DNA from: Lepidodermella squamata
Lineage: Eukaryota > Animalia > Gastrotricha
Length of the DNA stretch: 64,000 bases
Direction: 5' to 3'
Assembly: GCA_047495785.1 (NCBI GenBank)
Contig: JBLDXI010000024.1
Span: 2,914,001 to 2,978,000 of the forward strand
The position numbers were made by a program, and so were the translations under genes. Position 1 is the stretch's first letter, and each line of letters starts with the position of its first letter. Under the pieces are notes generated by a model. The model saw only the letters and a list, made by a program, of their open reading frames with translations, was not told the DNA's origin and searched no databases. Shown here in pieces: positions 5,158 to 61,297 of this stretch.

Positions 5158-7200
5158 GCCCTAACGTGTGCTGTATGCCTTGGCTATTACGTGAATCCTA
5201 AAAATATGCCAAGCTGCAGTCACACGTTTTGCGAGGCGTGTCTGCTCCAATTAGCAGCAACGGGGTCATCTTCGGCAATCGGCAACAGCACGTGCACCAT
5301 AAATTGCCCTGTTTGTCGCCAACCATGCCTGACAAGTCAGACGCACATCAGGGCTATGCCAAGGAATAGTGTCGCGGCGCAACTGGCAGAATTGGCTCGG
5401 AAACAAGAGCAGGAAGCGGCTTTCTTCGACTTCGCTAAGTGGCAGAGTGATTTCGAATGTGCCCATATTAGCTTTGCCGAGGATCATCGGAGGGTCTGCA
5501 AGCATTGCACGAAGTCGTTTTGCAGTTCTTGCCTCATAGTTCACATGGAACAGTTGAGACAGCGATTGCTCATAATTCGCCGAAGGTGGATTGAAGAACC
5601 AGAAATGCTTCAAAAACTGCAAACTTCTTACATCAATTTAGCGCAAGATTTTGAGCTGCAGTTAAACGATGTTAAACGAGCAGCAATTACTGCAAGAAAG
5701 CAGCAATTGATTGAGGACTTTGTTAAAGACATCGAAATCAAGTCGAACGAATTGATTTCACAGGCTGTCGAACTGAAATATCAAGAACTTGGACCAATTC
5801 GCCAAGCTCTAGAACTGCTGAAACCACAATCTGGCGATACAGCACTATTGATAGATCGACTCACTGCGATTGCTAGAACATCTGTGCTGAGATGCAACTG
5901 CGATGAAATCGCCGAAGTTTTAGATAAGCAGGTTAGTTGATTGAATTTGGCTACCACCTGCTGAATTTCACTTTATTCGGTATGATTTTAATGAAGATTG
6001 CGATAAAAAGTGAGAGTCGCAAGCGTAAAATAGTCTTTGATCCTAGTCCGAACAGCGGCTCTGTTGTTCTCGGCGAAATTAGCATATCCCAGATCATTGA
6101 GAAAAGCCAACCGTTAGCCTCTGCTGTGCCGGTAATGCCGATGACATGTCGTTGTATATCTCGCCACTGCAAAGAAACTGGTTCAGTAGGGGTATCGCTA
6201 CGGGGCACAAATTCGTTATCATACATCCCTCAATGGAAGATTTTGTTGACTTCTCCAACGCTTCAGGTAAGACATTTTGAACTTGATCATCATAGGTGGC
6301 TGTGAGCCTTAGACGATATACCAATCGACTGATATCAGATCATTTCAGCAGATCAATCAAGGAAAATTGAGCCATTGCATGGACCGCATGATATAAATAT
6401 CAAAGGTTACTACGATCAGGTCGTTTCAGGCGGAAACCGAATATTTTGGGTCGAGCATTGCTTTAAAAATGAAACAACTATGAAAAGCATTATGTCGGTC
6501 AGCATCTCATCTGAAGTGCGTTGCGGAAAGCAAGTTTTTGCGGCAGTCAATCCAATCTTAGTTTTCGGTCCTGTGAAAGATAAAGTGAAAGGGTTGGCTG
6601 TTTCCATCACTCGCAATGAATTGTACACTATCTGCAGTAATGAGTTTATTACTATTTCAACTATTGACTTCTCAGTTTTATCGAAAACCAATTTATCGAG
6701 GAAAGCTACCGTATTTGGTGTTTCTGATTATTTGGGAGTTTTTTGCTGTTTGAAATCTGAAGATGACTACAGACAATTTCTGGGATTGATCAGAAGGGGA
6801 TCAAGCGACGTAGTCAGCATAACGTGTACAACATCCCTCCGGGTAGAGCAACCAATCGAATTGAATGGCTATCCACCTTTTTTTGTTGAAGATGTACTGC
6901 AAGATAGAATTTTCATTGCTGAGCAAAGAGGCATGACAAGAATACGGGTAAGATTATTAGTTGAAATTTGACTCTTCATTATGATATTTATTTACCTATT
7001 AGGTTTTGTCTAATTGGAATGAGGACAAATTGAGGTTTGAAAAATGCGAAACGATAGTCACTAATCAGTATTTTCCTGTGGCAATGGCGAATTTAGCTAT
7101 AAATCACGGTCAAGCTGAATTAACAGAGACCGTGCTAGCAATCCTCGATCAACATGGAAGTACTGTCAAATTTCTGTCTATTGGCAAACTTAGTGATTGA
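5158..7200 (+). CDS. TRIM-like RING/B-box/coiled-coil protein with C-terminal beta-propeller-like domain (copy R1, divergent class A); first exon not located
   Basis: Exons 5158-5931, 5997-6266, 6339-6947, 7003-7200. RING CAVC..CSHTFCEAC..CPVC, B-box-like CAH..CKHC..FCSSC..H. Intron positions match R2 and R6. Confidence 0.8.
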
Positions 7201-7418
7201 AAGCTCACACAAAACGTGATGGCAGTTGACGTCATTGAGCCAATACGTCAACGCAATGAAATGAACCGGCTAAAAGCTAACGGAATGTTTTGTATGCCAA
7301 TAATGCCAAATTAGAATAAGGCCTATAATTTGTCGCCTCGCTGTTTTCTAACCAACGTAACCATGAAGAATGTTTTGGTTTCCACCGGTGTGCGATCATC
7401 TTTCTCGAAATCGAAATA

Positions 7419-7940
7419 TAACTTTGCATCCCGCACGTCCCACATCAGTGCAGCATCGTCCCGCATCAGTATCCCGCAGCCATCCCGCAGCTATCCTGCA
7501 CATCATCCCGCAGCAATCATCCCGCACTTGTTACATATGGCTGTTGCCAGATGAATTCAAATTTGCTACTGGATGTTTGCCAGTAATGGAATGTATGCGT
7601 TCTGCCGCCATTTTTGACCAGAAATTTGACTGACTTTGCTCGCATTTTCAGCGCGAACCAAGTATCGCCGGCCCATAAATCTTATATCGGCGGATAGCCC
7701 TCGAAATTCTGTACAAACTAGCCGCGGCCGCTAACCAAATTCGCCGCTGATCGTGTCGAAATCGGCTTCAGAAATCGCGATTTTGGTCTTGGCCGCACGC
7801 CAATTTGACTGACTTAATTTCACGTAATTCCAGCGCGGGATCCCGCACCCTGAGTTGCGGGATGTGCGGGATGAGGTGCGGGATTAAGTGAACTTGAGGC
7901 ATCCCGCACCGTCCCGCAGTTGATGCGGGATGCAGAGTTA
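7419..7940. mobile_element. MITE-like element with subterminal ATCCCGCA repeats
   Basis: Inverted termini TAACT(T/C)TGCATCCCGCA ... TGCGGGATGCAGAGTTA. Clustered CATCCCGCA repeats on the left and GCGGGAT repeats on the right. Confidence 0.6.
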
Positions 7941-8090
7941 ATTCGAGCTAAAAATTGATGCCGAAAATTGTGAAATTTTGTTGACCCTACTGTGAGTAAT
8001 AAAAATTCCATTGAACATTGAAACATGGTATTTTCAAGCTCATAGCATCCGCCCTATTATCGTGTAAAAACCCACTCAATGGGGATAAAA

Positions 8091-8133
8091 ATGTCTACCA
8101 TGACCTTATCGCTGAAGGAAGTTACCGGATAAG
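8091..8133 (+). promoter_or_regulatory. Conserved class A upstream element: inverted GATA pair CTTATC-N17-GATAAG
   Basis: The same motif and 17-nt spacing occur at 8105-8133, 14283-14311 and 25859-25887, about 80-85 nt before each class A ATG. Confidence 0.55.
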
Positions 8134-8217: not shown

Positions 8218-10488
8218 ATGGCTAAATCGGAATACAGCGACGATTTGAAAGCGGCAAGTCTTGCTTGCACAACTTGTTGAGAATTATGAATCCTACTTTT
8301 CATTTTTCAGGCTTTGACATGCGCAATTTGTTTGGGTTCCTATAAAAATCCGAGGATCATGCAGAACTGCTCTCACACTTTTTGCGAGGGTTGTATCATC
8401 GAACTGGTCCCAAAAGTCACCCCTGCTCCGCATAACCACGAAATTCTGTGCCCAATATGCCGCTTACCGAGTGTAGTTTGGGGCGAGAGCATCGCCACCT
8501 GGAAGAAAAACCATGTTGTTGCGGAAATCGCTGAGTGGTACCGCCAACAGGAATCGTTTTTGGCCAAAGAAGCTAGTACTGGAATAACATCTACTGATCC
8601 CCTGATGACCTTCAAATGCGAACATTTAATTGCAGTAAATCAGCGAATGACCTGTCCGCATTGCAAGCGATCTTTCTGTCATTCCTGCTTATTCGTTCAC
8701 ATGGAAAAAATGAAACAGAGGATGAAAAAAATTCGCGAAAAATGGGCGGAAAAGTTTTCGACTTCCGCATCTCTGGATGCCTTGAACGAAAATCTTGACA
8801 GTTTAGCTAAATCGTTCGATGATCAAATTGCCTCGGCTGCGATCGCGATAAATGAAGCGACAAAAGAAATTCTGCAAAATGTTGAAAAGGTCCTCCAGGT
8901 GAAAGCTGACAGTCTTGTGGCTAAATCCTTGGAAATTAAAGAAAGGAAGCTTGACCCGTTGCGTAGAGCTATCGAGCTGGCGTCGAGGCAAAGTAGCAAG
9001 TCCGATGATACCAACAGCCTAATCGATACCGTTATGGCTAACTCAGTTCTCGAGCACAGTTGCGAAGGGATTGCTGAGCTTCTGATCAAAGTTGAACAAG
9101 CTGATGAACAGGTTTGATAGGTCTGTAAACTGCCGTAGACGCTGTAAAAAAGGTATTTCAGCTTGAGAGAACGGGCTCCACTTCAATTGCTGAAATATTT
9201 TTCGCTCCAGCAGTGGATTCGATTAAGGGTTGTATGCACGTTTTAACAGAAAATTTGTCGCTTGGGGACATTGGCGTGACAGACAAAGAACCACAGCCGT
9301 TGCTCGATAATGCTAAGGAGCGGGAAACCCGTCATATGGCAGATGGGCTAATTGAGAATCCAAGTTGCGCAAAGCCTTATAACTTGATCAAGTCAGTTGA
9401 ACTCCCGTCGAATATTACCACCGTTACAGCCATGACGTACTTGGCGCCACTCAAAGCTCTACTTATTGCGACGGACTGCGGATATCAGGTGAATTTATGA
9501 GTGTTTATTTATTAATTGGTTTAGTTGGGAAAGCTTGAGGACGGCCGATATCTTCAATCTCTAAGGCTCAAAATGATTACTCTTTATTATCTCACTGCGT
9601 AATCACGCTCGAAATCAGGCATTCAATCGAATTCTTATCTTCATTCCAGGTGGTTTCACTTGAGTCTGGTGCTGGAACATCCGTGAAACCATTATTAGAT
9701 TTGACTTATCCTAGTCCTCGGTGTATGACTTCTCTCGACTGCCGAGTTTTCATTGTCATTGAAAGACTTGAGCACAACATGCTCCTGTTCGCATTCGATA
9801 TTGTACGATCGACTCGCAAAGGCAAGCAGTCATTCAGAATCAAAGATTTGTTCCAGATCATGAGAGCAATTGAGTTTGAGCGTTTAGCTGTTTCACCTAG
9901 GCGGAAGGAAATTTATACGATCGCGGGATTCCAACTATTCGCCATTTCAACCGCCAACTATGCTATGACGCAGCCACCTATATTGCAGGTACCCTATGAA
10001 GAACACAATGAGGTCGTTGGTGTAAGTCAATGGCTTGGAATCCTAATAAGGAAGCTATCTGTTCAAAAGAAACCTCATCTTGTTGCAAACCGTTGGCATT
10101 CAACTGAGCTACAACGTGTTAATGTCGTCTCAAGCCATGTGGAAAGTCTCCTAGAAGTTAGCGAAGACTTACTTCCATGCCTTATCGAAGATTCGAGCAG
10201 TAACAAACTATACTTCGCGCAAGGCGGAGCCAGTATTGAAGTTAAGGTTGACTTGTTGAATTTTCCTGTATTTTGCCTGAATTGTCCTTTGTCCTTTAGG
10301 TTTACTCTGTTAGGTCAGACGAAGGCCTTCCGACTGTTGAGCTGTTCCAAGAAATCACACTGAGTGAATTTGCAGCTTCAGTTATGACGGGTTGGCAAGG
10401 TGGTTTCTCGAACAACAACACTGAAATCAACATCGCAATTTTCGAGCCAAGCACGCGCAGCATCAAGCTTATTTCATTGATTGATTAA
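8218..10488 (+). CDS. TRIM-like RING/B-box/coiled-coil + beta-propeller-like protein (R2, class A)
   Basis: Exons 8218-8253 (MAKSEYSDDLKA, GC donor), 8311-9111, 9162-9488, 9650-10246, 10300-10488. All join in frame and the structure is conserved with R6. Confidence 0.85.
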
Positions 10489-12440: not shown

Positions 12441-13561
12441 ATGGAAAGCTTACAACAGTCTGGCAAAGCCAAAGACGTAAGATCGTGATACTTTGTACGA
12501 TTGAATGCATGCTAATGAATTCTTTAAAAACCCCTTAGATTCTCACGTGTGCGATTTGCTTGGAGTTTTTTGTACAGCCAAAACTTTTTCCAGGCTGTTC
12601 ACACACGTTCTGCGAGGGTTGCCTGGTTGAATTGCTAGGAAGTGGCGATAGGATTACGTGTCCTAGCTGTCGCAGAACGCATACGATGAGCAGCGCCGGA
12701 ATTCAAGGGTGGAAGAACAATTTCATAGCCGCTGAAATGGCGGATTTGATGCGAAGCCGACATCCAGCTATGCCAGCCGAAGAAGGGAAATCATTGGGGG
12801 ATTTCAGCTGCTCGCATCTAGCCTTGGGCGGGAAATCAACGCAGTGCTTACATTGTAACCAATTGTTTTGCGAACCTTGCTGCATTGTACACAAGGAGCA
12901 TATGAAACTGCAGCTTCATAAGATCAGTGAACAATGGCCGGAAACCCTCTCCAGTCCGTCAACCTCTCCCGAGTTCCTGAAAACTCACAACCAGATCTCG
13001 AACTGGTATGATGACCAGATGAAGAAGATTGACGAATCTATCGTCGCTGCGAGTGAGCAAATAATGAAAAGAATCGCCGGAAGCCTTCGCAAGAAATCCG
13101 AGGCGTTATTGATTCGGGCAGCCGAACTGAAGCAGAATCAACTGCAACAACTTCATGCAGCCGCTGATGAAGCCTGCAAAAGCGCCGAAGAAGCTAACAG
13201 CAAAATACATTCTATTTTGAAGTCATCAGTCTTACAGCTTAGCTGCGATGAAATAGCTGTTGTGTTATGCCAGGCGGAATCGTTTGATTTCAAAGTGAGT
13301 CTCAGGCGCAATTTGATGTCATCATTTAATGTTTCTATTTTAAAGCTGGTAAACCCAGATTGCAGCCGTGGCCTGGTTTTCTCAGGCGACCAGACTCGTA
13401 TCGACGATGCGCTGAGGCGATTCAACAACATCCTTTCATTAGGAAGTATTTCAATAACTGACGACTCTTTTCAGCCGGAATGCCACAATGTTGAAGAAAA
13501 GTCGACTCCGCCGGGTCCATCTGAAACGACTCGCTACGTCCCGCCACACCTTCGTAAATAA
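12441..13561 (+). CDS. TRIM-like RING/B-box/coiled-coil protein with C-terminal YVPPHLRK (R3, class B)
   Basis: Exons 12441-12476 (MESLQQSGKAKD), 12539-13294, 13346-13561. RING CAIC..CSHTFCEGC..CPSC. B-box-like CSH..CLHC..FCEPC..H. Confidence 0.85.
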
Positions 13562-14396: not shown

Positions 14397-15680
14397 ATGG
14401 CCAAATCGGAGCACAGCGATGACTTGAAAGCGGTAAGTCTTTGGCTTGCTTCAACGAAAATTGGATAATTATGATTATCATTTTTTAGGCTATAACGTGC
14501 GCAATATGTTTGGAATCCTATAAAAACCCGCGGATGATGCAGAACTGCTCTCACACTTTTTGTGAAGATTGTATAATCGGGCTGATTCCCAAAGTCACCC
14601 CTGCTCCGCATAACCCATTCGCACCTGCCTTGATACCACACCACACACAGCAACAGCAACAGCAACTGCAATTACCTGTCTTCATGCATATTCCACAGCA
14701 ACAGCAACAGCAACAGGAAATCATGTGCCCAGTATGCCGCTCGCCGAATGTTGTATTGGGCGGAGGCATCGCTACCTGGAAGAAAAACCATGTTGCTGCG
14801 GAAATAGCCGAGTTTTTTCGCCAACAAGAGTCCTTATTGGCTGCGAATCAAGCTAGTACTGGAATTACATCTGATGACCCTTTAATGAGCTTCAAATGCG
14901 AACATTTCATTGTTGTCAATCAACGAAAAACCTGCCCGCATTGCAAGCAGTCGTTTTGCCAATCTTGTCTATTTGTTCACATGGAAAGAATGAAACAGCG
15001 CATGAAACAAATTCGAGAAAAATGGGCGCAACAATTTCCGACTCGCTCATCTCTGGATGACTTGGACGAAGGTCTTGATTTTTTGGCTAAATCGCTCGAT
15101 CATCAAATCGCCTCGGCGGGAGTCGCGATATGTGAAACGACAAAGGACATTTTGCGAGCCGTTGAAAAGGTTCTCCAGGAGAAGGCTGACAGCCTGTCGG
15201 CTAAATCTTTGGAAATTAAAGAGAGAAAGCTTGACCCATTGCGCAGAGCTATCGAGCTGGCGTCGAGGCAAAGTACCACACCTGCTGATACCAACAGTCA
15301 AATCGATACTGTGATGGCTAACTCGGTTCTCGAGCACAGTTGCGATGGGATTGCTGAGCTTCTGATAAAAGTTGAACAAGCTGACGAACAGGTTTGAGAG
15401 GTTCAAAATTACTGTAATCCATGTTAAACAGCTGTTTCAGCTTGGCAGAATGGGCTTTATCCCAAATCCCGAAATATTGTTCGCTCCAGCAACTGAAACG
15501 ATCAAGCAATGTCTACGAGTGTTAACCGACACGTTGTCGCTTGGTCACATCGCCGTATTAGATAAAGAACCACAGCCACCACTGCATAATGATGTAGTGC
15601 ATAGGCGTCGAAAACATATTCCTATCATAGATCCAGGAACTGGTCTTGAAATCGGGCGTAATTTTATAAATTATAAATAA
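14397..15680 (+). CDS. Class A TRIM-like gene (R4) with poly-Q insertion inside the RING; propeller domain lost (truncated gene or pseudogene)
   Basis: Exons 14397-14432 (GT donor), 14489-15391, then 15441 to a stop at 15680. Only duplicated, broken pieces of the last propeller exons remain, at about 16210-16400 and 16566-16852. Confidence 0.7.
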
Positions 15681-16954
15681 TCATCCTATTGTGGTCAGGT
15701 GTCATAACGAACGTCGACTTCAACGAAAACTTGCTTGCAAACTCGAGTGGCACGAGCCAAACTTTGCACTTCCGCATGTTGCCAACATCGCTTGTAGTGA
15801 ACTATGTTTAACGAACGTTTCGCTGAACTGAACGATTCTGGGTGGTTTGGCGCCAGCTTTAAGCGTGATATTCACTATTCACATATTTTATATTGAACTT
15901 ATGTCCGACGTGCGGTGACAAGTGAGACGTGGCAAACGATTTCCAAGCAATTTCGGCCAGCTATTTTTCACTAGGCGTCTGAAAAGGCAACAGCTGACGC
16001 ATTCTAATCGAACGTCGAAATTGCTTGAAACCAAATTTTCGAATGACTTCGAAGCGATAGTGCCGAAATTCTCAGTTGATATAGCACAGAACGCAAATAT
16101 GGGGTTTCCGCTCAAATCTTGAAACCGTTGAGGTTTCGGTATTGGGACTTTTCAAACGATAAAACGAGATGATTAGATTATATTAGATTAAAGCGCTGAT
16201 ATACCTCCATTGAAGATTCATGCAGCAATAGAAATTACGGACGGAGGAGCCGGCATTCAAGTTAGTGTGAAATTTATGGATTGTGAATTTTCAAGTATTT
16301 TCCTGATAATTTTTTCCGTTAAATTGTGCCGTGTCAGCTTGGATGAACAACCACCCACACTTGAGCAGAGCCAAGCACTCGCACCATCAAGTTATTTTCA
16401 TTGATTTCATTGCTTGGCGTATACTGCTTGCTAATGGGACGTTACTAAAAAATGTCATTGTGTTTGAAATATTTCATATGATAATAAATTGGGACGGGTA
16501 TTCCCAGTCCGGTGTTTGCACTGCAGAACAACGCCGAACATAACGCAGATTTCCATCTATGCTTTATCGAGGATTCATGCGGCAGTAGAATTTTCATGAC
16601 GGCAGGAGTAGCCGGCATTAATATTAAAGTAAAATCTGTAATTGTTCAAGTATTTTACTGAATTTTTCATTTATGGTGTGCTCTGTCAGCTCAGACGAAC
16701 AGCTTCCGACTCCTGAGCTGGGCCACGAAATAACAGCGAGCGAATTTTCAACCTCAGCAATAGATGGGCTGGCGAGGTGGTTTCTCGGTAAATGACATCG
16801 CATTCTTGAGCCAAGCACTCGCAAAATCAAGCTCATTTCAGTGATGAATTAAAATGTTGCCTGGAGTCTACTGAGAGCATGCAAATAATACCGTAGCTGC
16901 TCAAACGGTTGACTTGATTCGCAGCCGATCTCTACCAGCAGCTTTTCAGGGAAT

Positions 16955-17270
16955 CAAGACGATCCCTTGAACAATTTCATCTGCTCGCACCTCGTCTTCG
17001 GTGGGGAATCACGAGCGGTTTGCCCGCATTGCGAGAAATCTTGCTTATTCGTTCATATGGAGCGTATGAAACAACATCGAATTCAAGCTATTCGCGAAAA
17101 ACTAGGCAAATCTTTTAAAAAGTCGTATAACACTCAAACAATAGCCAAGTATGATACCCAGTTTTGCAGAGCGTTACTGAAGAAATAGCCTCGGCAAGGG
17201 ACCAAATGATTAGAAGAATTTTTGGAATTCTGAACAAGAAATCGGCAACATTGTGAAGCCGACATTGCGT
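16955..17270 (+). pseudogene. Degraded B-box/coiled-coil remnant of a TRIM-like copy
   Basis: FICSHLVFGGESRAVCPHCEKSCLFVHMERMKQ..IREK, then stops and frameshifts. Confidence 0.65.
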
Positions 17271-17967: not shown

Positions 17968-17969
17968 TA

Positions 17970-20478: not shown

Positions 20479-21610
20479 AATTGTCCTTAAAAATATACGT
20501 CGAGTAGCTTTGACAATTCGATATTTTACGGTATGACATTCGTAAATCGTTCAGATATAAACTGTTTACTCATGTTATACCATACAAATATACCTTAGAT
20601 TCTCACGTGTGCGATTTGCTTGGGGTATTTTGTACAACCCAAACATTTTCCAGGCTGCTTGCATACATTCTGCGAGGGCTGCCTGGTCCAATTACTAGGA
20701 AGTGGCAATAATATTGCTTGTCCCAGCTGTCGCAAAACTCAATTTGTAAGCGGCTCCGGAATTAAAGGGTGGAAGACCGATTTAATCGCCGCTGAAATGG
20801 TGGATTTGATGCAAAGCTGTTTTTCAGCGATGCCAGCCAAGAAAGGGAATTCGCTGGGGGATTTCAGCTGCGCCCATCTTGCTTTGGGTGGGAAATCTAC
20901 GCAGTGCTTACACAGTAGCCAATCATTTTGTGAACTTTGCTGCATTGTGCACAATGAGCATATGGAAGTGCAGCTTCAGAAAATTAGTGAACAATGGGCA
21001 AAAACCTTAGGCAGTTCGCTTCTGCTGAGTTCTTGGAAACTCGAAGTCGGATATCGGCCTGGTATGATGACCAAATGAAGAAGATGGATGAATCTATCGC
21101 CGCTGTGAGTGAGCAAATCATGGAAAGAATCGCCGGAAACTTTCGCAAGCAATCCGAGGCGTCATTGTCCCAGGCGGCCGAGCAAAAGCTAAAACAACTG
21201 GAACAGTTTCATGCGGCCGCTGATGAAGCCTACAAAAGTTCCGAAGAAACCAACAGCAAAATACAATCCATTCTAAAGTCATCCGTCTTACATCTGAGCT
21301 GCGATGAAATTGCTGATGCGTTATGCCAGGTAGAATCGTTTGTGTTGTGTCTTGTCCAATCCAGGTCAGATTATTGAGGTCAGGTAGGAAAAGCACATGG
21401 CCGCTACTCACCACGTGGCCGCTGGGCTGGTCGAGCTTCGCCATTATGGTCATTATGTTTTATGGCTGTGTTTAATAAATTGCTTTTCTTGATCATATGG
21501 ATTTAATGTTGATACATTGATAGGGGATCTTTTACGATTAAATAAAATACAAGAAGATTGTCAATCGGTCTTTTGTTAAACACAACAAATTGGCGACGCA
21601 GTAAAAGCAA

Positions 21611-22660
21611 ATGGCGGATCCAGTAGCAACAACGGCAACCGACACAATGGCTCAATTGCTGCAACAGCTGGTCACTTTGAATATCGCTACTCAATCGACG
21701 CTGAACAATCACAGCGAAGCTATTCAAAAGCTGCTAGCGGAAAATGAAACGAAAACGACGCGAGAGTTCGCTGGTTTCAATCCACAAACCGAATTGTGGG
21801 AAGACTACAAGGGCAGGTTCGACACATACGCCCGAGCTCATGGTAAAACCAGTACGAAGGCAGCATATTTCCTGGCTTGTCAAACGGATGCCATGTATAA
21901 AGAGCTGCAACTACATGCAAAACAGCAACATGACAAAGAAATCAACAACTTGAAGTACGAAGAAATTTGTGCATACATGGCGTCGCAATACGACCCGAAA
22001 AAGTTTGTCGTCCGCGAACGGCACAAATTTTGGTCCAACATGGGTCGGAAGACAAATGAATCAATTCAACAACTGGTAAGCCGAATCCGCGCCGACGCTG
22101 CTACCTGCGATTTTCCATCTATCAAAGATCCCCTCGACGAAGCGTTAAGAACTCGGTTTATTTGCTCAATCAAAAACGAAGCAGTCTTGCGAGCCTGTTA
22201 CAAAATCAAAGACGACGAACTTACCTTCGCCAAAGCAGTGGAAGTGGCTATCGAAACCGAAGAGGCGGCTAAAACAGCGAAAGAAACGGTCGCTCCGGCG
22301 CCTCAGCCGGTTCATCAATTGTCTGCGAAACCTAAGAAGTTCGGTAATAACTCGAAATTTCAACGAAAGAATTTCCAAAAATCGAATCAACAATCATCGC
22401 AACCACCAGCAAACCAGCCCTCCCAGCTGCCTTGCGGATCTTGCGGTAAATCAGGTCATCCTCGTAAAAGCTGTTTCTATCGCGACTACGACTGCAATGC
22501 ATGCGGTAAACATGGTCACATCGCAGCAGCTTGTCGCTCAAACAACGCCGAAACTAAACCGGTCAAGGTTATCACGCTTCATAATCACAAATCGATCGCA
22601 CTGCATAAAGTTACTGATTCGACTGAAGTTGTCTACGAAGATATTCATTTTTGGTCTTAA
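21611..22660 (+). CDS. Gypsy Gag with two CCHC zinc knuckles
   Basis: W..Y..RF motif, ERHKF..Q/R..ESIQQLVSRIRADAATCDF, CGSCGKSGHPRKSC and CNACGKHGHIAAAC. Confidence 0.9.
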   Translation: MADPVATTATDTMAQLLQQLVTLNIATQSTLNNHSEAIQKLLAENETKTTREFAGFNPQTELWEDYKGRFDTYARAHGKTSTKAAYFLACQTDAMYKELQLHAKQQHDKEINNLKYEEICAYMASQYDPKKFVVRERHKFWSNMGRKTNESIQQLVSRIRADAATCDFPSIKDPLDEALRTRFICSIKNEAVLRACYKIKDDELTFAKAVEVAIETEEAAKTAKETVAPAPQPVHQLSAKPKKFGNNSKFQRKNFQKSNQQSSQPPANQPSQLPCGSCGKSGHPRKSCFYRDYDCNACGKHGHIAAACRSNNAETKPVKVITLHNHKSIALHKVTDSTEVVYEDIHFWS

Positions 22661-24146
22661 AAAATTTCATAATTTTTTGTTTGGTAGACACTTTTCGGTC
22701 GTCACTGATCACAAACCACTGTTGGCTTTGTTCAACCCGAAGAAAGGTGTGCAGCAAATGGCTGCAAAACGACTAGCCAGGTGGTGTTGGATGCTTCAAC
22801 AGTACGACTACGAAATCGAATTCAGGCGAACCGAAGACCATGGCAACGCCGATGCTCTGAGTCGTTTACCGGTCGGTGAAGATCCCAAATTCGATGGGGA
22901 GGAAAGTGCAGATGATGTTGATATGGTTCTGACAATCAAAACAATCGGGTACCAATCAACGAATGAAGCAAACGCTATGACTCGAGAGTCGGTTCGTGAC
23001 CCAATCGTGTCCAAAGCCGCGATGTTTATTCGAAATGGTTGGCCTAATCAACTGGATGAACAAGAGCTGCGAGATCTTAAAAAACTCTCACCGTATTTGT
23101 CAATTAACGGACCTTGTGTATTTTATGGAAACAGGTTGCTTATTCCCAAGAATTTGCGTGAAGATGTTCTGAAAGTCGTTCACCTGGGACATTTCGGTAT
23201 CCAGCGAATGAAGCAACTGGCTCGAACGGCGGTCTACTGGCCGGGTATCGATGATGCGATAAATAACCTGGCTAAAACCTGTTCAAGCTGCAACGAACAT
23301 CAAAACAACCCGATCAAAGCACCTGTTCACCCTTGGTCACTTCCGGAACAACCTTGGACTCGAGTTCATGTCGATCATGCGATAAATTTCCTCGAGTCGA
23401 ATTGGCTGATCTTGGTGGATTCAACATCGCGCTATCCTTGCATTCACCCCACCAAATCACTGACGGCCAAAACGACTTTGGAATTGCTCGATGAAGATTT
23501 CGCTCATTTCGGTTTTCCTCAGGTGCTGGTTACCGATAATTTTCCCATGTTTCATTCAGAAGAATTTCAACGGGGTTGTGCGGATCGGGGAATCATCCAC
23601 TTGACTGGCGCACCGTATAAGCCGGAAACTAACGGACTAGCTGAACGATTTGTTGAGACCTTCAAAAACTCAATGAAAAAGTCATCGTTAACGAAAGCGG
23701 ATGCCTTGAACGAATTCCTGATGGTCTATCGTCGTACTCCTTTGGCGAATGGCTATTCACCAAGCGAATTACTCAACGGTCGCCAAATTCATGCAAAAAT
23801 TGATACCCTGGTGTTAAACCCGATTTTGAATGACCAAAAGCGACAAGCGACTCGAACCGAAACGGCGACTACGGCAACCACCTTTACTACTGGTGATGAA
23901 GTCTGGGCTCGTGTCCTGGGCGGTCGTCTCGCGAATCGTGATCCAAAATGGGTAGCTGCGGTTGTCGAACAAGTTTGTGGACCCCGACGTTATCAAATTC
24001 GAGTTCTATCTGATGATTTACTTTGGACTCGTCACGTCGATCAACTTTGTCCACGTTTTGGCGATGCTCCACCTGAACCTCCGGTGATCAATCCAACTCC
24101 TGAAATTGGCTTACGTAGAAGTCCGCGCTTACAAGTTCGTCTGTGA
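22646..24146 (+). CDS. Gypsy Pol remnant: C-terminal part of RNase H + complete integrase
   Basis: IFGLKKFHNFLFGRHFSVVTDHKPL..NADALSRLP; HHCC (H.GH..CSSC); DDE motifs VHVDH / TDN / NGLAERF. Different frame from gag. Confidence 0.85.
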
Positions 24147-30917: not shown

Positions 30918-31134
30918 TAATTCAATGACAAATGCCTTGAATTTTAGCTTTGAAAATAGCGGCCGATTTGGGCTTTTAAAAGAATAATAAGATAATTATA
31001 TTAGCGAGATAAGATAATTGAACCGTGGGAGTGTATATATTTAAAATCGAAGAGGGATTATCATGCAGTTTTGAGAAGTTAGAAGAGCATGCGATTGTTA
31101 TAACGGCGACTAACATTTGGGATCATCATGGAGA

Positions 31135-45345: not shown

Positions 45346-47423
45346 ATGTTCAGTCTATTTAACATGAAGTTGCATTACTTATCATCTGTTCTCCTACTAA
45401 TCTCTGTTAGTTCTGCTGTTGAAGTCGAAATTCTTGATAATTCACCAGATCAGGACAGAACAACCGATGTAGCTGAACCTTTAACTGTGGACAGTTGTTC
45501 CCGTTATCCTTTATTGGTAATCTACGAACGCCCACCTGGCGTGAACCCTAGAACCAACCAGCCAATTACTGGCATCATTCAGTATGTAGCTAGGTTCAAC
45601 GAAAGCCAAAGAACAGCTTCATGGGCAGTTTATTCCTTCAATTCAAGAATGGGCCCGTTTGGCATCAGGCGGAGAGATGCAAACTCATGGCGGCCTCTGA
45701 CCTGCCCGCAACGAAATTTGACCCAATTGAGGGCTCAAAACTTCACGTCGAGGGATAGGGGTGATTTAGTTCCTTTCGACTCTTTCAGTTACAGTTTACA
45801 AGCAGCGAAAGGGACGTTCTTTTTCGTTAATGCAGCCCCTCAGGATATCTATGCAAATCGAGGCCCTTGGGCTAAACTAGAGGCTCAGACTAAGTCGAAG
45901 TTACTGCAGTTCAAAAACGGTTACGTCGCCTCAGGTATCTGCGCCAATTCAACGAATTTAGTTCCAGATTGCTTCTGGAAACTTCTCTGCGTTAAACTGA
46001 GTAGTACCGGACCTGTTACAGCCGCGTACTTCATGCATGACAATCGAGGTGTTACTCTAGATAGGGATGACAGACGTAGGGAAATCGCATGGCCTAGAGA
46101 AGTTGCGACTCTGAAAGCAAATGCATCGATGGTAGCGGATTACGACTTCATGTGGCAGTCAGCTGCAAATTTCACATCGAGCTCCTCGAGTTACTTTTGG
46201 CCAACTGCAGAAGAATGCCGTCTACAGAGCAGCCTGCCCTTCAAAAGCCTTGATGAGCTTTACGAAAAGAAGGTAAGATTCATTGGGTAAGATTCAGTGA
46301 GTACAAGCATTCACCTTGGATTTGTTTTCAGCTTAATGGTACGGATGATCTGATCCGGCAATTCTGGATCTCGATCTCCCTCGCAATCTGGAAACGGCCT
46401 CCAGTAACAGCATCTACTACGACAACCCTAGCCCCTTCGATACCATACGTTTCTGAATCTTTCCCGGTTGATAGTTGCGAGAAGTACCCCGTCATTATTG
46501 TCTACGAAAAAGCTCCGGTAGCCAACCCAGTCGCGCCCGGAGTCGTCGAATACGTTATTAGGTTCAACGAGGCTATCAAAACAGCAGCTTGGACCATTTA
46601 CGCCTACAACAGTAGGATGTCGTCAATGGGTGTTAATCGAGACGATGCTGATACCTGGAAAACGTTTTCATGTCCTAAACGGACTGTAGCTCAGCTGGCA
46701 ACGGCGGATTTCTCGGGTAGAGATCGAGGCCATCTAGTACCTTTCGACGCGTTTTCTTACAACTTACCAGCTGGGAAAGCAACCTTCTTCGTGCTGAACG
46801 CAGCTCCTCAGGATATTTATACGAACCGAGGGCCTTGGGCGCAATTGGAGGCCGTGGTGAAGGACACGCTTCTCCAGCTTAAAAATGGGTACGTCGCGAC
46901 TGGAGTCTGCAACAATGCCGTGAATTTAGTGCCGGATTGCTTTTGGAAACTGATGTGCGTTAAATTGGGCAATGGCCCGGTAACTTCGGCCTATTTCACG
47001 TTTGATAACCGAGTTTCAATGAATGATAACGACACTCTGAGAGATGGTCGTAAGGTCGAGTTGGCATTCCCTCGGGAGATTTCCTATTTCAAGAATAACG
47101 CGTCGATGATCACTGACTACGACAATATGTGGCAAACTGCGTTCAAGTTCGCAAACGGCAGTTCAGATGCGCAATGGCCTACCCCTGAGCAGTGCAGACA
47201 GCAAAGCAACTTGCCATTCACGAGCATTGATGAAATGTACGAGAATAAGGTGAGATAACTGCAATGATTTAGGAGCCAAAATCTAACTTATTAACTTTTG
47301 CAGCTGACTGGGAATGACGAGGTTATCCGCCAATTCTGGCTGTCGGTTTCGATGCGAATCTGGAAGCGGCCACCGAGAACTACACCCAAAGCTACGACTA
47401 CAAAAGCAACGAGCGGACGCTAA
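45346..47423 (+). CDS. Secreted DNA/RNA non-specific endonuclease with two tandem domains
   Basis: Exons 45346-46272, 46332-47249, 47304-47423. Signal peptide. RDRG(D/H)LVP..N.APQ..NRGPW..LE..VPDCFWK occurs twice, with a Thr-rich linker. Confidence 0.85.
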
Positions 47424-47574: not shown

Positions 47575-49624
47575 ATGCTCAAGTTACTACCATTGACAGT
47601 TGTTTTAGTGTCAACAATATGCGTTGTCTACGTATTCCAAGAATTTTTTATTTTCATCTATGATTACTCTTGTGATTTCGTCTACAACACGACCTACGGG
47701 CCCAGAGATGAAGACCCGGTTAAAAACCGGGATTGGTTTTCGGTGTCCTATTTAGGCCATGGTGGCTATCCTGTCAATATCGACTTCGACAAGCTGAGTT
47801 TTGTCAACAGGAGGAAAGTTTCCAAGGCATTTGATACTCATGGTTTCAACGAATTTCTCTCCGACATGATACCGCTCAATCGAACCATCCGTGATGTGAG
47901 GATTGACGACTGCAAATTCCTGCCGGACTATCCTATTGATGAAATGCCTGATACATCGGTTATCATATGTTTCTACAACGAAGCCTGGTCGACCCTTCTG
48001 AGGACAGTTCATTCCATTCTTATCCAATCTCCTCCTAAATTGTTACGCGAAATCATTTTAATCGACGATTATTCCGATTTTGACCATTTGAAGGAGCCAC
48101 TGGAGGAATACATCAAAGCCTTACCTAAGGTTAGGCTAATCAGGACCAGGGAACGAGAAGGACTGATTCGAGCAAGAATGCTAGGGACGAGACATGCATT
48201 GGGGGATACTTTCACTTTCTTAGACTCTCATGTTGAATGCACGCACGGATGGCTAGAACCTTTACTGTATCGGATTTACCAGAACAAGACAAATGTAGTT
48301 GCGCCAGTTATTGACAACATCAATCCTAATAATTGGGACTACTTCTTGATTTCTCACCATAATATGGGCTATTTTGACTGGAATTTAGTGTATAATTGGA
48401 TGCATCCAGTAAGTAACCTCAAATCCAGCCAAAAGTGGTTAAAATATGATTTTTTAGTTACCAGAGCGAGTCTTGAAAATGCGGGTTAACGAAACCGATC
48501 CTGTTATAATGCCAGCAATGGCCGGAGGTCTTTACACGATTCATAGGGACTACATGCAGTGGCTGGGTGGTTACGATGAGAAAATGGATATTTGGGGTGA
48601 GTTGAACTTTAACTACAGCATTCACTTTCAGCAAATTCGATTTTTCAGGTGGAGAAAATATTGAGATGAGCTTCAAAATATGGACGTGTGGCGGTCGCAT
48701 CGAAATGATGCCATGCAGTCATGTTGGGCACATCTACCGCTCAAAACTGCCGTACTCTTTCGGATGGAAAGCTAAACGAGACCCCGTCAAACGAAATGTT
48801 CTGCGAGCCGCTGAAGTTTGGATGGATAGCTATCGGTTCTACTACTACGAGCAAATTCAGTTCAATATCCTCGACTTTGGCGATGTAAGCGAGCGAAAAG
48901 CTCTTCGGCAAAGTCTCAAGTGCCACTCGTTCGAATGGTACCTCAAAAACATAATTCCAGAGGTGATCGTCCCGGGCGAGGGAATATTTTTCGGCGAAAT
49001 AAGGAGTGAAGTTACTGATCTATGTATCGAAGCTTCAACTGTTGGGTACAAACTTGTGTCTGTAAAGCCATGTACTGGCAAAGCAGGTATGTTCGGCCGA
49101 AAATTGTTCAAATCGGTTTTATTTTTGAAATTTAGGTGACCAGTATTGGATATTTACGAAAAACAACGAAATCCGACGAGAGGCTGGCTGTTTCGAGTTG
49201 AAAGCCGCGGGTAATAGCCTCTACACGAATTTGTGCCTTGGCAATAAAGGAAATCAAAACTTCGAATATTCACAGGTAACAAAACTGTTAAATTAGATAT
49301 CCACCTAAATTTTGAATTTCTAAGGTTTCGAAACAAGTTCGTAGCGTAGAGCATAACTTGTGCCTTGAGCTGAATCGGCGACGTCGAGAATTAATGATGA
49401 CAGCGTGCGACGGCAGCAATCCTAATCAAAGGTGGTATTGGTACCGACGAGGCCCACGAGATATTCCTCTCCATTTATACCCATCGGACACGTTACCACC
49501 TTATCGGCGACAAGTTACGCCGAAAATAACTTGGAACATCATGATTGGCTGTGCTCAAATTATTTTTGTGATCATCAAAGCATTTTACGAGTTTGAATGG
49601 CTGAAGTGTGCAGATATAAATTAG
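47575..49624 (+). CDS. Polypeptide N-acetylgalactosaminyltransferase (GALNT family)
   Basis: Exons 47575-48408, 48458-48596, 48649-49086, 49136-49275, 49325-49624. N-terminal TM, FYNEAWSTLLRT, LDSHVEC (DxH), WGGENIEMS, PCSHVGH, ricin-type lectin repeats. Confidence 0.95.
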
Positions 49625-51767: not shown

Positions 51768-52910
51768 TCAACTCGCGGTGTAACGAGCAGTGCCTCTTGC
51801 CAAAGGAAGGGTAACTATAACAGTAACCGATGCTGAGACAATGAGTGCCACAGTGGCTAGAGTTATCTGCATTGAAACAACAGAGCTCTGAAGTATCACC
51901 AAAATTAGTACAGTGGCTGCGGCAATCGTCGTCAAATTGAAGAGCGCGATTCCAAACACTCGATCAGCCAGATCGACCGAACGTATCGAAGTCGGAACGC
52001 GCGAATGCAACCGAAAAGCATAACCCCGAAATTCAACCCTGCCAGTGCTTGGAAATAGGCGTCTTGGGTATCTGAGTGGCAGACGGAAATAATGACTCGA
52101 GTCAGGACATCGCTCTTTGCGTCATAGAACATCTTTTCATTACTAACTTTCGAGTAGAATACTGGCTGATCTCGAATCAACAGTACCATCATCACAACCA
52201 AATTTGACAATGGCCTTTCGTTACTTTCGTTTCTTTCGTACAATTCTCCGCCACCATGTTCGGCATTGCCGTAGGATCGATAGTTGACAACGAATACACC
52301 ATGAAAGCATAACGAGGCCCCGTGATCCCAACATTGTGGGCGAAACAAAGAAACTGAGTAATCACAGCGGTTTCAGTGACGTGAATCACAAAAATTCGAG
52401 CGTCGCTTTGCTTTGCAGATTCGATATATCCGCGGTCGATGCCGGATCCGATGTCGAACCATATAAGTCTAACCTCGAATTCATCAATCGCACTTAGGAA
52501 GTGAGTTGCCATTCGGACATTGAATGGGTTGTCAGCATTAGCGTACGCGGCGATTTTCAACCAACGGTTTTGTCGGAGAAAGGACAGGCTGATGTAATTT
52601 CCTCGGTCAGCCGAGCTCCTGATTCGGTACAGGTTAGGGTAAATCTTCCGATTTTCGGTATAAGCTGGACCATGGCAAGCGTAAGCTATCGCGATGCTGT
52701 GAATTTCATGAACCATCGCCCCATAAGATTTGCAACCTGGGGTGAAATTAACGCCAAGGATTATCGGGGATTGGTAGTTGCTGGCGATTCCGGTTACGGA
52801 ATTTCGACCTCTATCGAATATCTCATCGAATTCCCGAGTGAAGCCGACGGCAACAGTGGTTGCCTGGACCCCACTTGGGCCATCTCCAACATCGCGAATC
52901 ACGTTATCGT
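51768..52910 (-). pseudogene. Deleted and frameshifted GABA-B-like class C GPCR
   Basis: Flytrap pieces (IILG..TPGC, YPNLYR, ARIFV, GITGPRYAF) jump directly to the last TM helices across three frames. Confidence 0.75.
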
Positions 52911-56926: not shown

Positions 56927-57200
56927 TACACTAAATTAAATAAAGTTTATTGCTATCTAACGAAAAGTTTATAAATTGTTGTGAATGTGCCAGCGAATGA
57001 AAACTACTTGAAAAAAAATAAGGCGATTCATCGAACAACTTTCATCGAGGAAACTTACAACTGAATATATGATGAAATTTACCTAAATTCGGACATCAGC
57101 TTGAGATCCTTATAGTTCAGTTCCTTGAAATTTGAATTTGAAATTGCTTAGGGTGGGGACGGAGAAGCTAGCTGACGTATAAACTATAAACCTTTTTCAG

Positions 57201-58280
57201 GCAGTAACTTGTTGTGTTTGTTATGGCTACTACGTCAGCCCGAAAAATATGCCAAATTGCGGACACACATTCTGCGCAGCCTGCCTTGTTGAGATCCATC
57301 AACGCAGTGGAGGAGGAACTCAGATCGAATGCCCTCTGTGCCGCGAAGTCAGTCAAGTTGGCACGGGTGGTATCGCTGCTTGGAACAAAAACATCGTCGT
57401 GGCTAATATTGCTGAAATGATACGAAAGCAGGAACAGGAGGAGAAGCCTATTGAGCCTACTGAGGCTGAGTTACGAGATCAATCACTGAAATTTGAGTGC
57501 AAACACTCTTCCAAGCAGAAACTGACCTGCTCACACTGTAATGCTGCTTTCTGCCCGAGTTGTTTAGTTGTGCACAAGGAGAAAATGAGGCAACGATTGA
57601 AGGCACTTCACGATAGGATGCTAACTACCTTTGCCAGCACGGCTAATTTGGAAATTTTGAACGAAAGTTGCTCGAAAGCAAATCGCCTTTTTGACGAGCA
57701 GGTTGCTAGAGTTAACGGGATTGCATCTGGAGTTGCAGAAATGGTAAGGTGTGAAGTCGATGAAATACTTGCCGATAAGCTTACTCAAGTGAACGGGGAA
57801 GCCCAAATCTTGAAATATGAGAATACTAAAACGCAACGAGAGGCTGTTGAGCTTGCAGAGTGGTTAACCAGTCAAGATGCAACCAGTTTGAATAGGCGAA
57901 TCCATGTTATCCTATCCGGTTCGGTTCTCGACCACAATTGCGATAACGTTTCCGAGCTTCTCATGGAGGCTGAGAAAGCTTGTCAAAAGGTATAACAGTC
58001 ACAACATTTTGCAATAGTCACGCAATTCTTGTTCTAGCTCGATACGGCGATTAATGCACCTGCTTCAGGCATCGAATTTACACCGGCATCGGCAAAAGTT
58101 GCAAGGGTTTTGACTTATTTCCGACAAGAATTGACTCTTGGGTGGCTATCAGCTTCAACTTCTTATCTGCAGCAACCGACTGATACTGAAACGATTACGG
58201 ACGGCAAGGAGGAAATCGAATCGGATGCTAGCTTCGAGTTAGTACTGGCTTCTGCATCCGACGATGATAGCGACACTTAG
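57201..58280 (+). CDS. TRIM-like RING/B-box/coiled-coil protein with acidic tail (R10, class D); first exon not located
   Basis: Exons 57201-57989 and 58038-58280. RING CCVC..CGHTFCAAC..CPLC. Ends EEIESDASFELVLASASDDDSDT. Confidence 0.8.
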
Positions 58281-58765: not shown

Positions 58766-58953
58766 CAGTGGAACCCCGATTTCCCGTCACCTGATTTTCC
58801 GTCTGACGGGAAATCGCGACATGTAATTATTTAGGAGCGACTGGGACCCGCAGGGGGCAATTTCACGCAAAACTACCTAGATTTCCAGTCAATTTTGATT
58901 TCCCATTAGGATTTCCGTGAAACCGCAGAAGACGGGAAATCGGGGTTCCACTG
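58766..58953. mobile_element. pogo/Tigger-like MITE
   Basis: TIR CAGTGGAACCCCGATTTCCCGTC / GACGGGAAATCGGGGTTCCACTG. TA is present only on the right side. Confidence 0.75.
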
Positions 58954-60125
58954 TATGAAGTAACAATGAAACCGTTTCAATAAATAACTTATTATTAGCA
59001 AAATAGGTGATTGTTGTGAAAGCTCAGGCCTCAAAACTGTCTATGCTAACCTATCATCCGCAGTTATTCTTAAAGGCTGTGAATCTTTTTGCTGTCTAAC
59101 CTACCTGATATCGAAAGTCAGCTGCTGTTTTCGTCTGCGATTAAAATAAAATTTCAGTTGTGGACACCAGGACACCAGGACAAACTAAACGCGGACAACC
59201 AACGGTGGAACGCTTTCCGTTCCCCCGTCATAGCTTCGTCTGTATGTAATGCCATGATAATAGTCGGACAATAAGCGGAGAGTTGAAGTTGCGTTATAAA
59301 AAATTCTCTTTCAGCACAAAAAATGTTCACATCATGTTGTCTTTTTCACCTAGTATCTAGTATATATCAGAGTTTCAACAATCATATATACCTAATAAAT
59401 AATTATCATGCAATTTCGTCTTTGAAATTCAACTCCAGAAGATTTCAATACTGCAGATATTGAAGCCCCAGTCCATTTCTCTATCCTTAATCCCGTTACG
59501 CCCTTTTGAACGCCAATGTGATGTTGCATGTGTTGCACAGAGAATTCTTTTCACCAAAGAAGGCTGATGAGAATGAACAAAATGGATGAATGATGAATCA
59601 CAAAATAAAATGAATAATTCTTTCCAGCATGCATACGTTTGATAACTGTGTTATCTTTCCGTCAGAAATTCTTCGGAACTAATGCGTTATCTCGCTCGGA
59701 AGGCTCAATTGGGCGTTGTCTATATATAAAGAGACTGAAATGAAATTTACTCTCAACACTACCGGCGATATATTATTTTTTCTTAATTTTCGAGGATTCA
59801 GATGGCTAGTTCGGATCACTCGGATGATTTCAGTCAGGTAAAGCCTCAAAAAATGAGATTTTGAATTCCGCACCTCCTAAAAACTAACAACGTTCCGAAA
59901 TTCTCTACAATTTTCCTATTATAAATACCTTTTAAATCCGCGCGCCTAATCGAACAAAATTAAGGAATGAAACTTGGCAACTGAAAAATAATAGGTTATT
60001 TGATCGGTATATAACCTGAATTAGGTTTTGTCTCGATTCTCGATCATTCTAGATGAGTACCTTTTCGGGGTTTCTATTCATGCTTTCTTGAGAAAAAAGC
60101 TGGCTGACGTATAACATTTGTTTAG

Positions 60126-61297
60126 ACAGTGACTTGTGGTGTTTGCTATGGCTACTACCTCAACCCGAAAAATATGCCGAATTGCGGTCACACGTTCTGC
60201 GAAGCTTGCCTGGTTGAGATGCACCAAAGCAAAGGAGGAACTCAGATCGACTGCCCGGTGTGCCGAAAAGTCAGCGAAGTTGGGGCGGGTGGCATCGCTG
60301 CTTGGAACAAAAACGTCGTCGCTGCTCAAATCGCTGACATTATCCGAAAGCAGGTAGAGGAGGAGAAGCCTATTGAGCCTACTGAGGCCGAGCTACGCGA
60401 TCAATCGCTGGAATTTGAGTGCAAACACGCCAACAAGCAAAAAATTACATGCTCACATTGCAAGGCAGCCTTCTGCCAATTTTGTCTATTCGTGCATAAG
60501 GAGAAAATGAAGCAACGATTAAAAGAAATCAAAACAATGTTGCTAACCACCTATTCCAGCTCGGCTAGCTTGGAAGTTTTGAACGAAAGTTGCTCGAAAG
60601 CAAAGCGCCTTCTTGACGCCCAGATTGCTGGAGTTCACGAAATTGCTTCTGCAGTTGTAGCTATGATAAGGTGTGAAGTCGATGAAATTCTTGCCGATAA
60701 GCTTGGCCACATAATGCGGGAAGCTCAGCTCATGAAAGATGCGAAACTCAAAACGCAACGGGAGGCTGTTGAGCTTGCAAAAGGGTTGACTAGCCGCGAT
60801 GCAAGCAGCTTGAATCGGCGAATCGATGTTGTCTTATCCAGTTCGGTTCTCGACCACAATTGCGATAACCTTTCAGAGCTTCTGATGGAGGCTGAGAAAG
60901 CTTGTCAAACGGTATGAACAAAAATTAAATTATGTCATTTTTCTGACTATATTTGGTCTAGCTCGATACTGCGATTGATGCACCTGTTATAGACATCGAA
61001 TTTACACCGGCATCGGCAGAGGTTGAAAGTGTTCTGGCTTGTTTGCGACGCGATTTGACTCTGGGGTCGCTGTCAGGTGCAACTGCTTCTCGCCAGCAAC
61101 CGACTAATACCAGGACACGTGCAGTTACTGACGATGTTCTTGAATGTCTGCAGGAGTTACCTCTGGGGTTGCGGTCAGCTGCAGCTGCTCCTCGACAGCA
61201 ACCGACTAATACCCGGACGCGCTCTGATACTGAAGAGCAAATCGAATCGGATGCTCTTTTCGCGATGACGCTACTTGCTTTAAGTGACGAAGAGTGA
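60126..61297 (+). CDS. TRIM-like RING/B-box/coiled-coil protein with MIU-like tail (R11, class D); first exon not located
   Basis: Exons 60126-60911 and 60962-61297. Duplicated RQQPTNTRTR. Ends EEQIESDALFAMTLLALSDEE. Confidence 0.8.

Follow-up and report, generated by a model that had tools for sequence, protein, structure and literature searches.

A tandem cluster of TRIM-like genes in the gastrotrich Lepidodermella squamata, with a likely propeller-bearing ancestor and two truncated classes

TRIM-like genes form a tandem cluster in a 64,000-nucleotide (nt) stretch of DNA from the gastrotrich Lepidodermella squamata (contig JBLDXI010000024.1, positions 2,914,001 to 2,978,000). This whole stretch, which we call the window, is of animal origin, and its introns are very short. 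The genes share a core made of a RING finger, a B-box-like second finger and a coiled coil (RBCC), and they differ in what follows it. We read them as a lineage-specific tandem cluster of TRIM-like ubiquitin ligases (E3s) that goes back to one propeller-bearing ancestor and was shaped by two truncations, by duplication and by decay, and we give this account as a whole a probability of about 0.7.

A tblastn search of the window with the core open reading frames (ORFs) located eleven copies or remnants of the core within 5158-61297, all on the plus strand, and one extra fragment. Matches between cores of different classes had E-values of 1e-23 to 1e-54, far past the chance level, and together with the alignment they bear out the eleven copies or remnants counted in a preliminary description of this DNA. 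The nine readable cores (R1, R2, R3, R4, R6, R8, R9, R10 and R11) were aligned. The C3HC4 RING was invariant at all eight ligand positions, as were the I..W..N helix behind it and the second finger, F.C.H-x(8-9)-C.HC...FC..C..VH.E. Some 130 residues of heptad-like sequence follow the second finger and lead to a late S..L...C motif. The alignment thus confirmed the RING, W..N helix, B-box-like finger and late motif of the preliminary description.

A 12-residue exon 0 lies upstream of the core, and in every intact copy a splice donor stands at the identical codon boundary after it. All introns are phase 0. The phase-0 intron after the core had been proposed before, and both the common donor and the splice joints seen in R6 and R9 (below) agree with it. 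Class A (R1, R2 and R6) has four coding exons after exon 0, as counted from the core, while coding in class B (R3, R8 and R9) and class D (R10 and R11) ends inside exon 2. Exon 2 (e2) begins with L in every class, and its first ~45 residues are homologous between classes in the same register, up to (S/T)(L/I)G.(I/L) and then QP. The hhalign E-values for this segment were 5.6e-4 (A-B), 1.6e-3 (B-D) and 0.013 (A-D), and tblastn also matched it across classes. It had been described as a short homologous strand; the homology holds, and the strand does not, the segment being predicted as a helix (residues 284-300, low confidence) in an AlphaFold2 model of R3. This shared helix may be the TRIM linker that packs on the coiled coil. 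The copies are as follows, with approximate starts and ends for the core exons.

5158-7200, plus strand: R1, divergent class A; core 5158-5934, e2 5997-6266, e3 6339-6947, e4 7003-7197 and stop.
8218-10488, plus strand: R2, intact class A; exon 0 8218-8253 (GC donor), core 8311-9111, e2 9162-9488, e3 9650-10246, e4 10300-10485 and stop.
12441-13561, plus strand: R3, intact class B; exon 0 12441-12476, core 12539-13294, intron 13295-13345, e2 13346-13558 with terminal RYVPPHLRK, then stop.
14397-16849, plus strand: R4, class A with the propeller mostly lost; exon 0 14397-14432, core 14489-15391.
16961-17179, plus strand: isolated core fragment from the B-box region, residues ~95-177 (tblastn E 1.6e-12).
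20599-25483, plus strand: R5, class B pseudogene; core 20599-21341, frameshift near 21000.
25965-28322, plus strand: R6, intact and transcribed class A; exon 0 25965-26000 (GC donor), core 26052-26852, e2 26906-27226, e3 27492-28079, e4 28134-28319 and stop.
28719-29339, plus strand: R7, class B pseudogene; core 28798-29339, stop inside the RING, large internal deletion.
29815-30917, plus strand: R8, class B; exon 0 29815-29850, core 29919-30647, intron 30648-30698, e2 30699-30914 with terminal LYVPPHRRKK.
31135-32256, plus strand: R9, intact and transcribed class B; exon 0 31135-31170, core 31235-31990, intron 31991-32040, e2 32041-32253 with terminal RYVPPHLRK.
57201-58280, plus strand: R10, class D; core 57201-57989, intron 57990-58037, e2 58038-58277 and stop, acidic tail.
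59802-61297, plus strand: R11, class D; exon 0 59802-59837, core 60126-60911, intron 60912-60961, e2 60962-61294 and stop, 34-residue internal duplication, acidic tail.

The exons of R1 are open, with GT/AG boundaries set by homology to R6. R9 looks frameshifted as raw ORFs; after splicing it is intact. The sequence of exon 0 is MAKSEYSDDLKA in R2, with one residue different in each of R4 and R6, and MESLQQSGKAKD-like in class B. That of R11, MASSDHSDDFSQ, resembles the class A version. An exon 0 was looked for in R1 and not found, and the stretch of R10 homologous to the R11 exon 0 has neither an ATG nor a donor, so that no exon 0 was found there.

To place the core, we compared it with profile, structure and protein databases. 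Pfam RING profiles matched above threshold, zf-C3HC4 with up to 37.5 bits (cut-off 21) and zf-RING_UBOX with up to 33.8 (cut-off 25.2). A profile of the core, searched against PDB sequences, matched TRIM3 (8amr) with an E-value of 8e-21 over positions 1-227, which comprise RING, B-box2 and coiled coil; TRIM2 followed (E 1.5e-19), and then TRIM56, TRIM25, TRIM23, TRIM21 and TRIM5. Compared with a B-box, the second finger has seven of the eight ligand positions, all invariant (C, H, C, C, C, C, H), with a first spacing of C-x-H and the eighth histidine missing. The AlphaFold2 model of R3 had a predicted local distance difference test score (pLDDT) of 59 and was folded with the in-frame 51-nt intron read through, which added 17-18 artefactual residues. 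It shows the RING, the second finger, helices at 111-136, 143-227 and 235-270 (pLDDT ~70-78) and a disordered tail. These helices, and a profile alignment that runs through the TRIM3 coiled coil, point to a coiled coil in the family. The top Foldseek matches of the model were TRIM2 RING structures at 38% identity; its matches were to RINGs only, with no global TRIM match.

Close relatives of the core were not found in these databases. A word-based search of 5.8 billion proteins with the R8 ORF gave no match, and the same search with the core alignment returned only four distant TRIMs, among them one that resembles TRIM56 and two that bear NHL domains, at no more than 30% identity. Look-alikes in the ESM Atlas were RING/B-box clusters from nematodes, molluscs and rotifers, which we treat as leads only. 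Since the core matches TRIM2/3-type proteins and the searches gave no close relatives, the sequences form a TRIM-like, strongly diverged and apparently lineage-specific family, in agreement with the lineage-specific TRIM family proposed previously.

Class A genes carry two further exons after exon 2, and these are all-beta. We folded exons 3-4 of R6 with AlphaFold2, with the in-frame 54-nt intron read through (17-18 artefactual residues), and obtained an all-beta model of low confidence (pLDDT 52). All significant Foldseek matches of this model were beta-propellers (designed SAKe, TolB, beta-TrCP, Fbw7, Kelch and YVTN), with E ~6e-4 and template-modelling (TM) scores of 0.2-0.35. An all-against-all structural comparison with VIA-align had propellers alone in its top 50 (Z 8-10 across residues 1-199 of the model), with the NHL propeller of Mei-P26 (Z 8.3) tied with WD40 and other propellers. 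The ESM Atlas gave weak propeller-family look-alikes, again leads only. Sequence methods were silent on this tail: a PDB sequence search gave no match, an exhaustive profile search with exon 3 gave none among 1.84 billion representatives, and BLAST found no significant internal repeats. Exon 2 of class A (107 residues) had no Pfam match at E up to 10, and hence no filamin/ABP280 repeat. Collectively, the model comparisons suggest that a propeller is the likely, but not secure, fold class of the class A tail, as had been proposed before; given the TRIM2/3-like core, an NHL propeller is plausible. A propeller without detectable relatives is a candidate fast-evolving recognition domain.

The preliminary description had called the C-terminal modules interchangeable. 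We built maximum-likelihood trees from the core exons of the nine readable copies. The core tree grouped class B (R3, R8, R9; support 100/100), class D (R10, R11; 100/99) and R2/R4/R6 (97/99) and left R1 as a long lone branch. When three outgroup TRIMs were added, the nine window cores were monophyletic (81/94) and their four lineages formed a polytomy. Over both trees, support was 98-100 for class B, 98-100 for class D and 97-99 for R2/R4/R6. Each tail class is thus one clade of the core tree, which indicates that each tail type arose once and was then copied together with its core, without swapping; the modules do not appear to be interchangeable. Cores of different classes are ~30-35% identical. 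The propellers of R1 and of R2/R6 are homologous (e3 of R1 and R6 is 28% identical, tblastn E 5e-10). Since two of the four lineages carry homologous propellers and those of the outgroups are of the NHL type, a propeller-bearing ancestor followed by two truncations within exon 2 is the likeliest and simplest history.

R4 shows propeller loss under way. Its core is intact, with a ratio of non-synonymous to synonymous substitution rates (dN/dS) of 0.21 against R6, and its exon 2 is cut after residue 63 (residues 1-63 only, 15441-15632, then a stop). Downstream lie remnants of e3 (residues 166-196, the last 31, at 16536-16628) and of e4 (16676-16849). R5 has lost one B-box cysteine and the donor in addition to its frameshift, and has displaced 3' pieces at 24360-24647 and 25373-25483. 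The birth-and-death turnover suggested earlier is borne out by the damaged R4, R5 and R7, by the doubtful R10 and by the isolated fragment at 16961-17179.

We then asked whether the short forms are under constraint. Core dN/dS was 0.18-0.21 in the R2/R4/R6 clade, 0.27-0.40 in class B and 0.32 in class D. Between R2 and R6 it was 0.21 for the core, 0.24 for e2, 0.47 for e3 and 0.44 for e4. Class B exon 2 had a dN/dS of 0.28-0.53, with bootstrap intervals below 1. Its final nine codons spell RYVPPHLRK in R3 and R9. Between the two genes, 5 of the 7 synonymous sites have changed and none of the 20 non-synonymous ones (Fisher exact p 2.6e-4), and this absence of non-synonymous change beside five synonymous ones argues that the motif is under selection. 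The motif has decayed in the pseudogenes, to RSAPHLRR in R5 and to VYVPRHLHKR in R7. For class D exon 2, dN/dS was 0.81 with an interval of 0.50-1.37, which includes 1; this points to near-neutral evolution of the class D tail.

Transcript evidence came from a public run, X1, taken as RNA by inference, with a DNA run, X2, beside it. X1 is RNA-like in that it has GT..AG joints missing from X2, zero depth in intergenic bins and intron skips in R6 and R9. In R6 there are three such joints, none of them in X2, which skip 26853-26905 (53 nt), ~27227-27491 (265 nt) and ~28080-28133 (54 nt); in R9 one joint skips 31991-32040 (50 nt). R8 is represented by a contig at 30348-30591 and by a loose end at 30692 compatible with a spliced junction, so that X1 probably bears out its intron. 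Depth in X1 was about 1 over R7, and it fell to zero after R6 and after R8 (0 at 30900-31099). Since depth is zero behind R8, the R9 stop lies in exon 2 and tblastn found no propeller-like sequence downstream of class B or D genes in the window, these classes do not appear to be spliced onto hidden propeller exons. An X1 contig fits the window to 31134, the base before the R9 start codon, and continues with 19 letters unlike the window, which could stem from a different allele, from a paralogue or from an artefact of assembly. Together, the constraint on exon 2, the synonymous-only change in the motif, its decay in pseudogenes and the transcription and splicing of R8 and R9 argue that class B is a real, constrained short form.

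In the history that we propose, one ancestor would have had RING, variant B-box, coiled coil and beta-propeller, with an RBCC closest to the TRIM2/TRIM3 (TRIM-NHL) group, and class A would retain this full-length form. By analogy with the family, the class A RING would recruit a charged ubiquitin-conjugating enzyme (E2), the coiled coil would dimerise and the propeller would bind the target. Classes B and D would each stem from one truncation inside exon 2, directly after the conserved ~45-residue linker helix, followed by tandem duplication. Class B would have kept or gained the terminal RYVPPHLRK, which selection would maintain, and class D would have an acidic tail that drifts fast and to which no function can be assigned. 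Turnover would proceed by deletion, frameshift and retroelement insertion, with R4, R5, R7 and perhaps R10 decayed. Truncation and tandem duplication are an ordinary evolutionary route for the TRIM family. The full form stands here beside R4 in mid-loss and beside two short classes truncated in one and the same exon, and the cluster shows cleanly, and in a way that can be dated, how diversity arises among TRIMs.

Several observations weigh against this reading or parts of it. Pfam zf-B_box reached a best E-value of only 0.65, in R10, below threshold, even though the profile still aligns the segment to B-box2 of TRIM3/TRIM2. In the class A tail, Pfam at E up to 10 detected neither NHL nor WD40 nor Kelch repeats; the model behind the propeller reading is of poor quality (pLDDT 52, TM 0.2-0.35) and covers exons 3-4 only, and an NHL identity is no more than plausible. 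Given the four-way polytomy, the case for an ancestral propeller with two losses depends on parsimony and on the NHL-bearing outgroups. The X1 run is presumed to be RNA, and the transcript evidence covers R6, R8 and R9 only. For class B, the R8 sequence YVPPHRR has an arginine at the hydrophobic position and fails the motif pattern discussed below, and a DDX3X motif peptide showed no direct eIF4E binding by nuclear magnetic resonance, the partner of the motif being debated (PMC11251518).

Classes B and D might instead have arisen by neutral truncation and be what is left of propeller genes, in decay or without function. Truncation and decay are indeed common in the cluster, as R4, R5 and R7 show, and class D fits in part: its exon 2 dN/dS of 0.81 (0.50-1.37), the lack of a recognisable exon 0 in R10 and the recent 34-residue duplication in the R11 tail are all compatible with drift. 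The class B and D cores, however, have a dN/dS of 0.27-0.40 at synonymous rates (dS) of 0.45-0.76, and their ORFs are all intact, unlike those of the true pseudogenes. With the motif changing only synonymously between R3 and R9, and R8 and R9 transcribed and spliced, we consider neutral leftovers an improbable description of the two classes.

The preliminary description had gone further and seen classes A, B and D as subunits of one system that could heterodimerise via related coiled coils, with substrate-sensing, translation-docking and ubiquitin-binding arms. All classes do keep the same RBCC core and the exon 2 linker helix, all lie in one cluster, and classes A and B both appear in one RNA-like run. 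Against this, the cores of different classes share only about a third of their residues, with long branches between them, and TRIM coiled coils usually homodimerise. The ubiquitin-binding role of class D is unsupported (below), and one clade per class is explained by simple divergence. Such a multi-subunit system seems to us very improbable. A third view would see in class A immune sensors that diversify as TRIM5 or the TRIMs of fish do, with the propeller as pathogen-recognition surface and classes B and D as regulators or decoys. Tandem birth-and-death and a propeller without detectable relatives that evolves faster than its core (dN/dS 0.47 against 0.21) speak for it; yet the ratio is below 1 and comes from a single close pair, and fast turnover is by itself no evidence of immunity. 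We regard this view as doubtful. There is as yet no support for the cluster as an integrated multi-subunit or immune system, and the descent of all copies from one propeller-bearing ancestor remains our preferred account.

The feature of the cluster that merits experiment is the selected motif of class B. The C-termini of R3 and R9 fit the pattern YxPPx[ILMVA][KR] (PMC3510515), and in the R3 model the tail (301-339) has a pLDDT below 50 and is predicted to be disordered. This motif is known from the N-termini of DDX3X, Ded1 and LAF-1 (YIPPHLR/YVPPHLR; ELM LIG_eIF4E_2). YVPPHLR, as in R3 and R9, also occurs in the published LAF-1 sequence, and the DDX3X version is YIPPHLR. Yeast Ded1 has YVPPHLR at its N-terminus as well. 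As in DDX3-type proteins, the R3/R9 motif lies in a predicted disordered segment and is under purifying selection; in contrast to them, it stands at the extreme C-terminus of a predicted RING ligase and not at the N-terminus of a helicase. The class B motif is that of DDX3/Ded1, and of the three genes said to carry a YVPPHLR tail, R3 and R9 (RYVPPHLRK) do and R8 (LYVPPHRRKK), with R at the hydrophobic position, does not. In R8 the motif may be lost or altered in function.

The same pattern has been reported in eIF2A, DDX3X/Y, TDRD3, NOM1, CDV3, ZC2HC1A and eIF3g, and apart from the DDX3X/DDX3Y pair these carriers were judged convergent (Davey et al., PMC3510515). Changing DDX3X residues 38-44 to alanine greatly reduced co-purification of RPS11, eIF4E, eIF4G and eIF4A (PMC11251518). 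By this analogy, the class B motif would probably dock the ligase onto a translation-machinery partner that reads YxPPxΦ[KR] in DDX3/Ded1, and translation docking is a reasonable hypothesis for class B. The fuller proposal, that class B genes encode RING ligases aimed at translation initiation through a C-terminal YVPPHLR evolved or retained after propeller loss, and that they would ubiquitinate the partner of the motif or compete for it, we put forward very tentatively. If true, class B would represent a kind of TRIM not described before, and it would lend itself to a search for whatever reads the DDX3 motif. A second, unrelated carrier of a DDX3-type motif could help to find its debated partner.

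Class D had been credited with an acidic tail that resembles the motif interacting with ubiquitin (MIU) and could bind ubiquitin. 'MIU-like' is a name given to these tails and not something observed in them. The acidic tails are present in R10 and R11, and they are short and probably helical, as in MIUs and ubiquitin-interacting motifs (UIMs). The MIU consensus is D-x-x-L-A-x-x-L, with an essential central alanine. DALFAMTL of R11 resembles it, with alanine at the aligned position, whereas R10 has glutamate there. Pfam at E up to 10 found no UIM-type family match in the tail. With a dN/dS of 0.81, indistinguishable from neutral evolution, the ubiquitin-binding claim did not hold up. An LC3-interacting region (LIR; F-E-L-V in R10) was also considered and was rejected, as it is not conserved in R11.

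Compared with known systems, the cluster is most like the TRIM-NHL proteins of class VII (TRIM2, TRIM3, TRIM32, TRIM71/LIN-41, Brat, Mei-P26 and NHL-2), with the same order of RING, B-box2-like finger, long coiled coil and, as the likely fold, a C-terminal beta-propeller. TRIM3 and TRIM2 are the best solved relatives of its core and share the RING-flanking helix (I..W..N, matching ALQNNF), and one of the structures that tie as fold matches for the class A tail is the NHL propeller of Mei-P26. Unlike TRIM-NHL proteins, the cluster has no NHL or filamin signature in Pfam and its propeller has no sequence relatives. Its B-box has C-x-H in place of C-x2-H and lacks the last histidine, and outside the RING its identity to known TRIMs is at most 30%. 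By its textbook definition, the TRIM family joins an RBCC to a C-terminal domain that varies (Sardiello et al. 2008, PMC2533329), and the varying ends seen here are no new principle. The family at large likewise combines one chassis with different ends, includes members without a C-terminal domain and undergoes species-specific tandem expansions that turn over fast (PMC2533329). What sets the cluster apart is that its short forms can be followed back to the truncation, inside a single exon, of a relative in this cluster that bears a propeller, and that one short form has a defined terminal short linear motif.

Some further features of the genes were seen. In R4, the second loop of the RING (14600-14700) holds a 33-residue glutamine-rich insertion with the frame still open. 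The first intron starts with GC (GCAAGT) in R2 (8254) and R6 (26001) and with GT (GTAAGT) in R4 (14433); in R2 and R6 it looks like a conserved GC-AG intron. Upstream of exon 0, WGATAR sites number 2-4 per 200 nt in R3, R7, R8, R9 and R11 (window average 0.42), and in R2, R4 and R6 an upstream block of ~150 nt that contains CTTATC and GGATAAG is strongly conserved. These sites and this block suggest common GATA-type regulation. The element GCTGACGTATAA, a half site like the cAMP response element (CRE) with TATAA, is conserved at 57160-57180 (R10) and 60095-60112 (R11). In each gene it precedes the core exon by ~20-35 nt, a position that in R11 falls within intron 0, and it might act as an internal promoter.

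Within R5 lies a fragment of a long terminal repeat (LTR) retroelement (21611-24146), in which an ORF that resembles gag and has zinc knuckles precedes RNase H and integrase (Pfam RT_RNaseH, Integrase_H2C2 and rve); no protease or reverse-transcriptase ORF was seen in it. Between R9 and R10 there is a family-C-receptor-like gene (35954-38245, plus strand) that combines an ANF_receptor ligand-binding region with a C-terminal half that is hydrophobic; another ANF_receptor fragment lies at 52195-52902 (minus strand). At 45346-47258, two genes in tandem encode secreted DNA/RNA non-specific endonucleases (Pfam Endonuclease_NS), and a polypeptide GalNAc-transferase-like gene comes next at 47575-49139. 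An F-box protein gene (32746-33462, minus strand) stands tail-to-tail with R9, so that a second kind of ubiquitin-ligase subunit adjoins the cluster.

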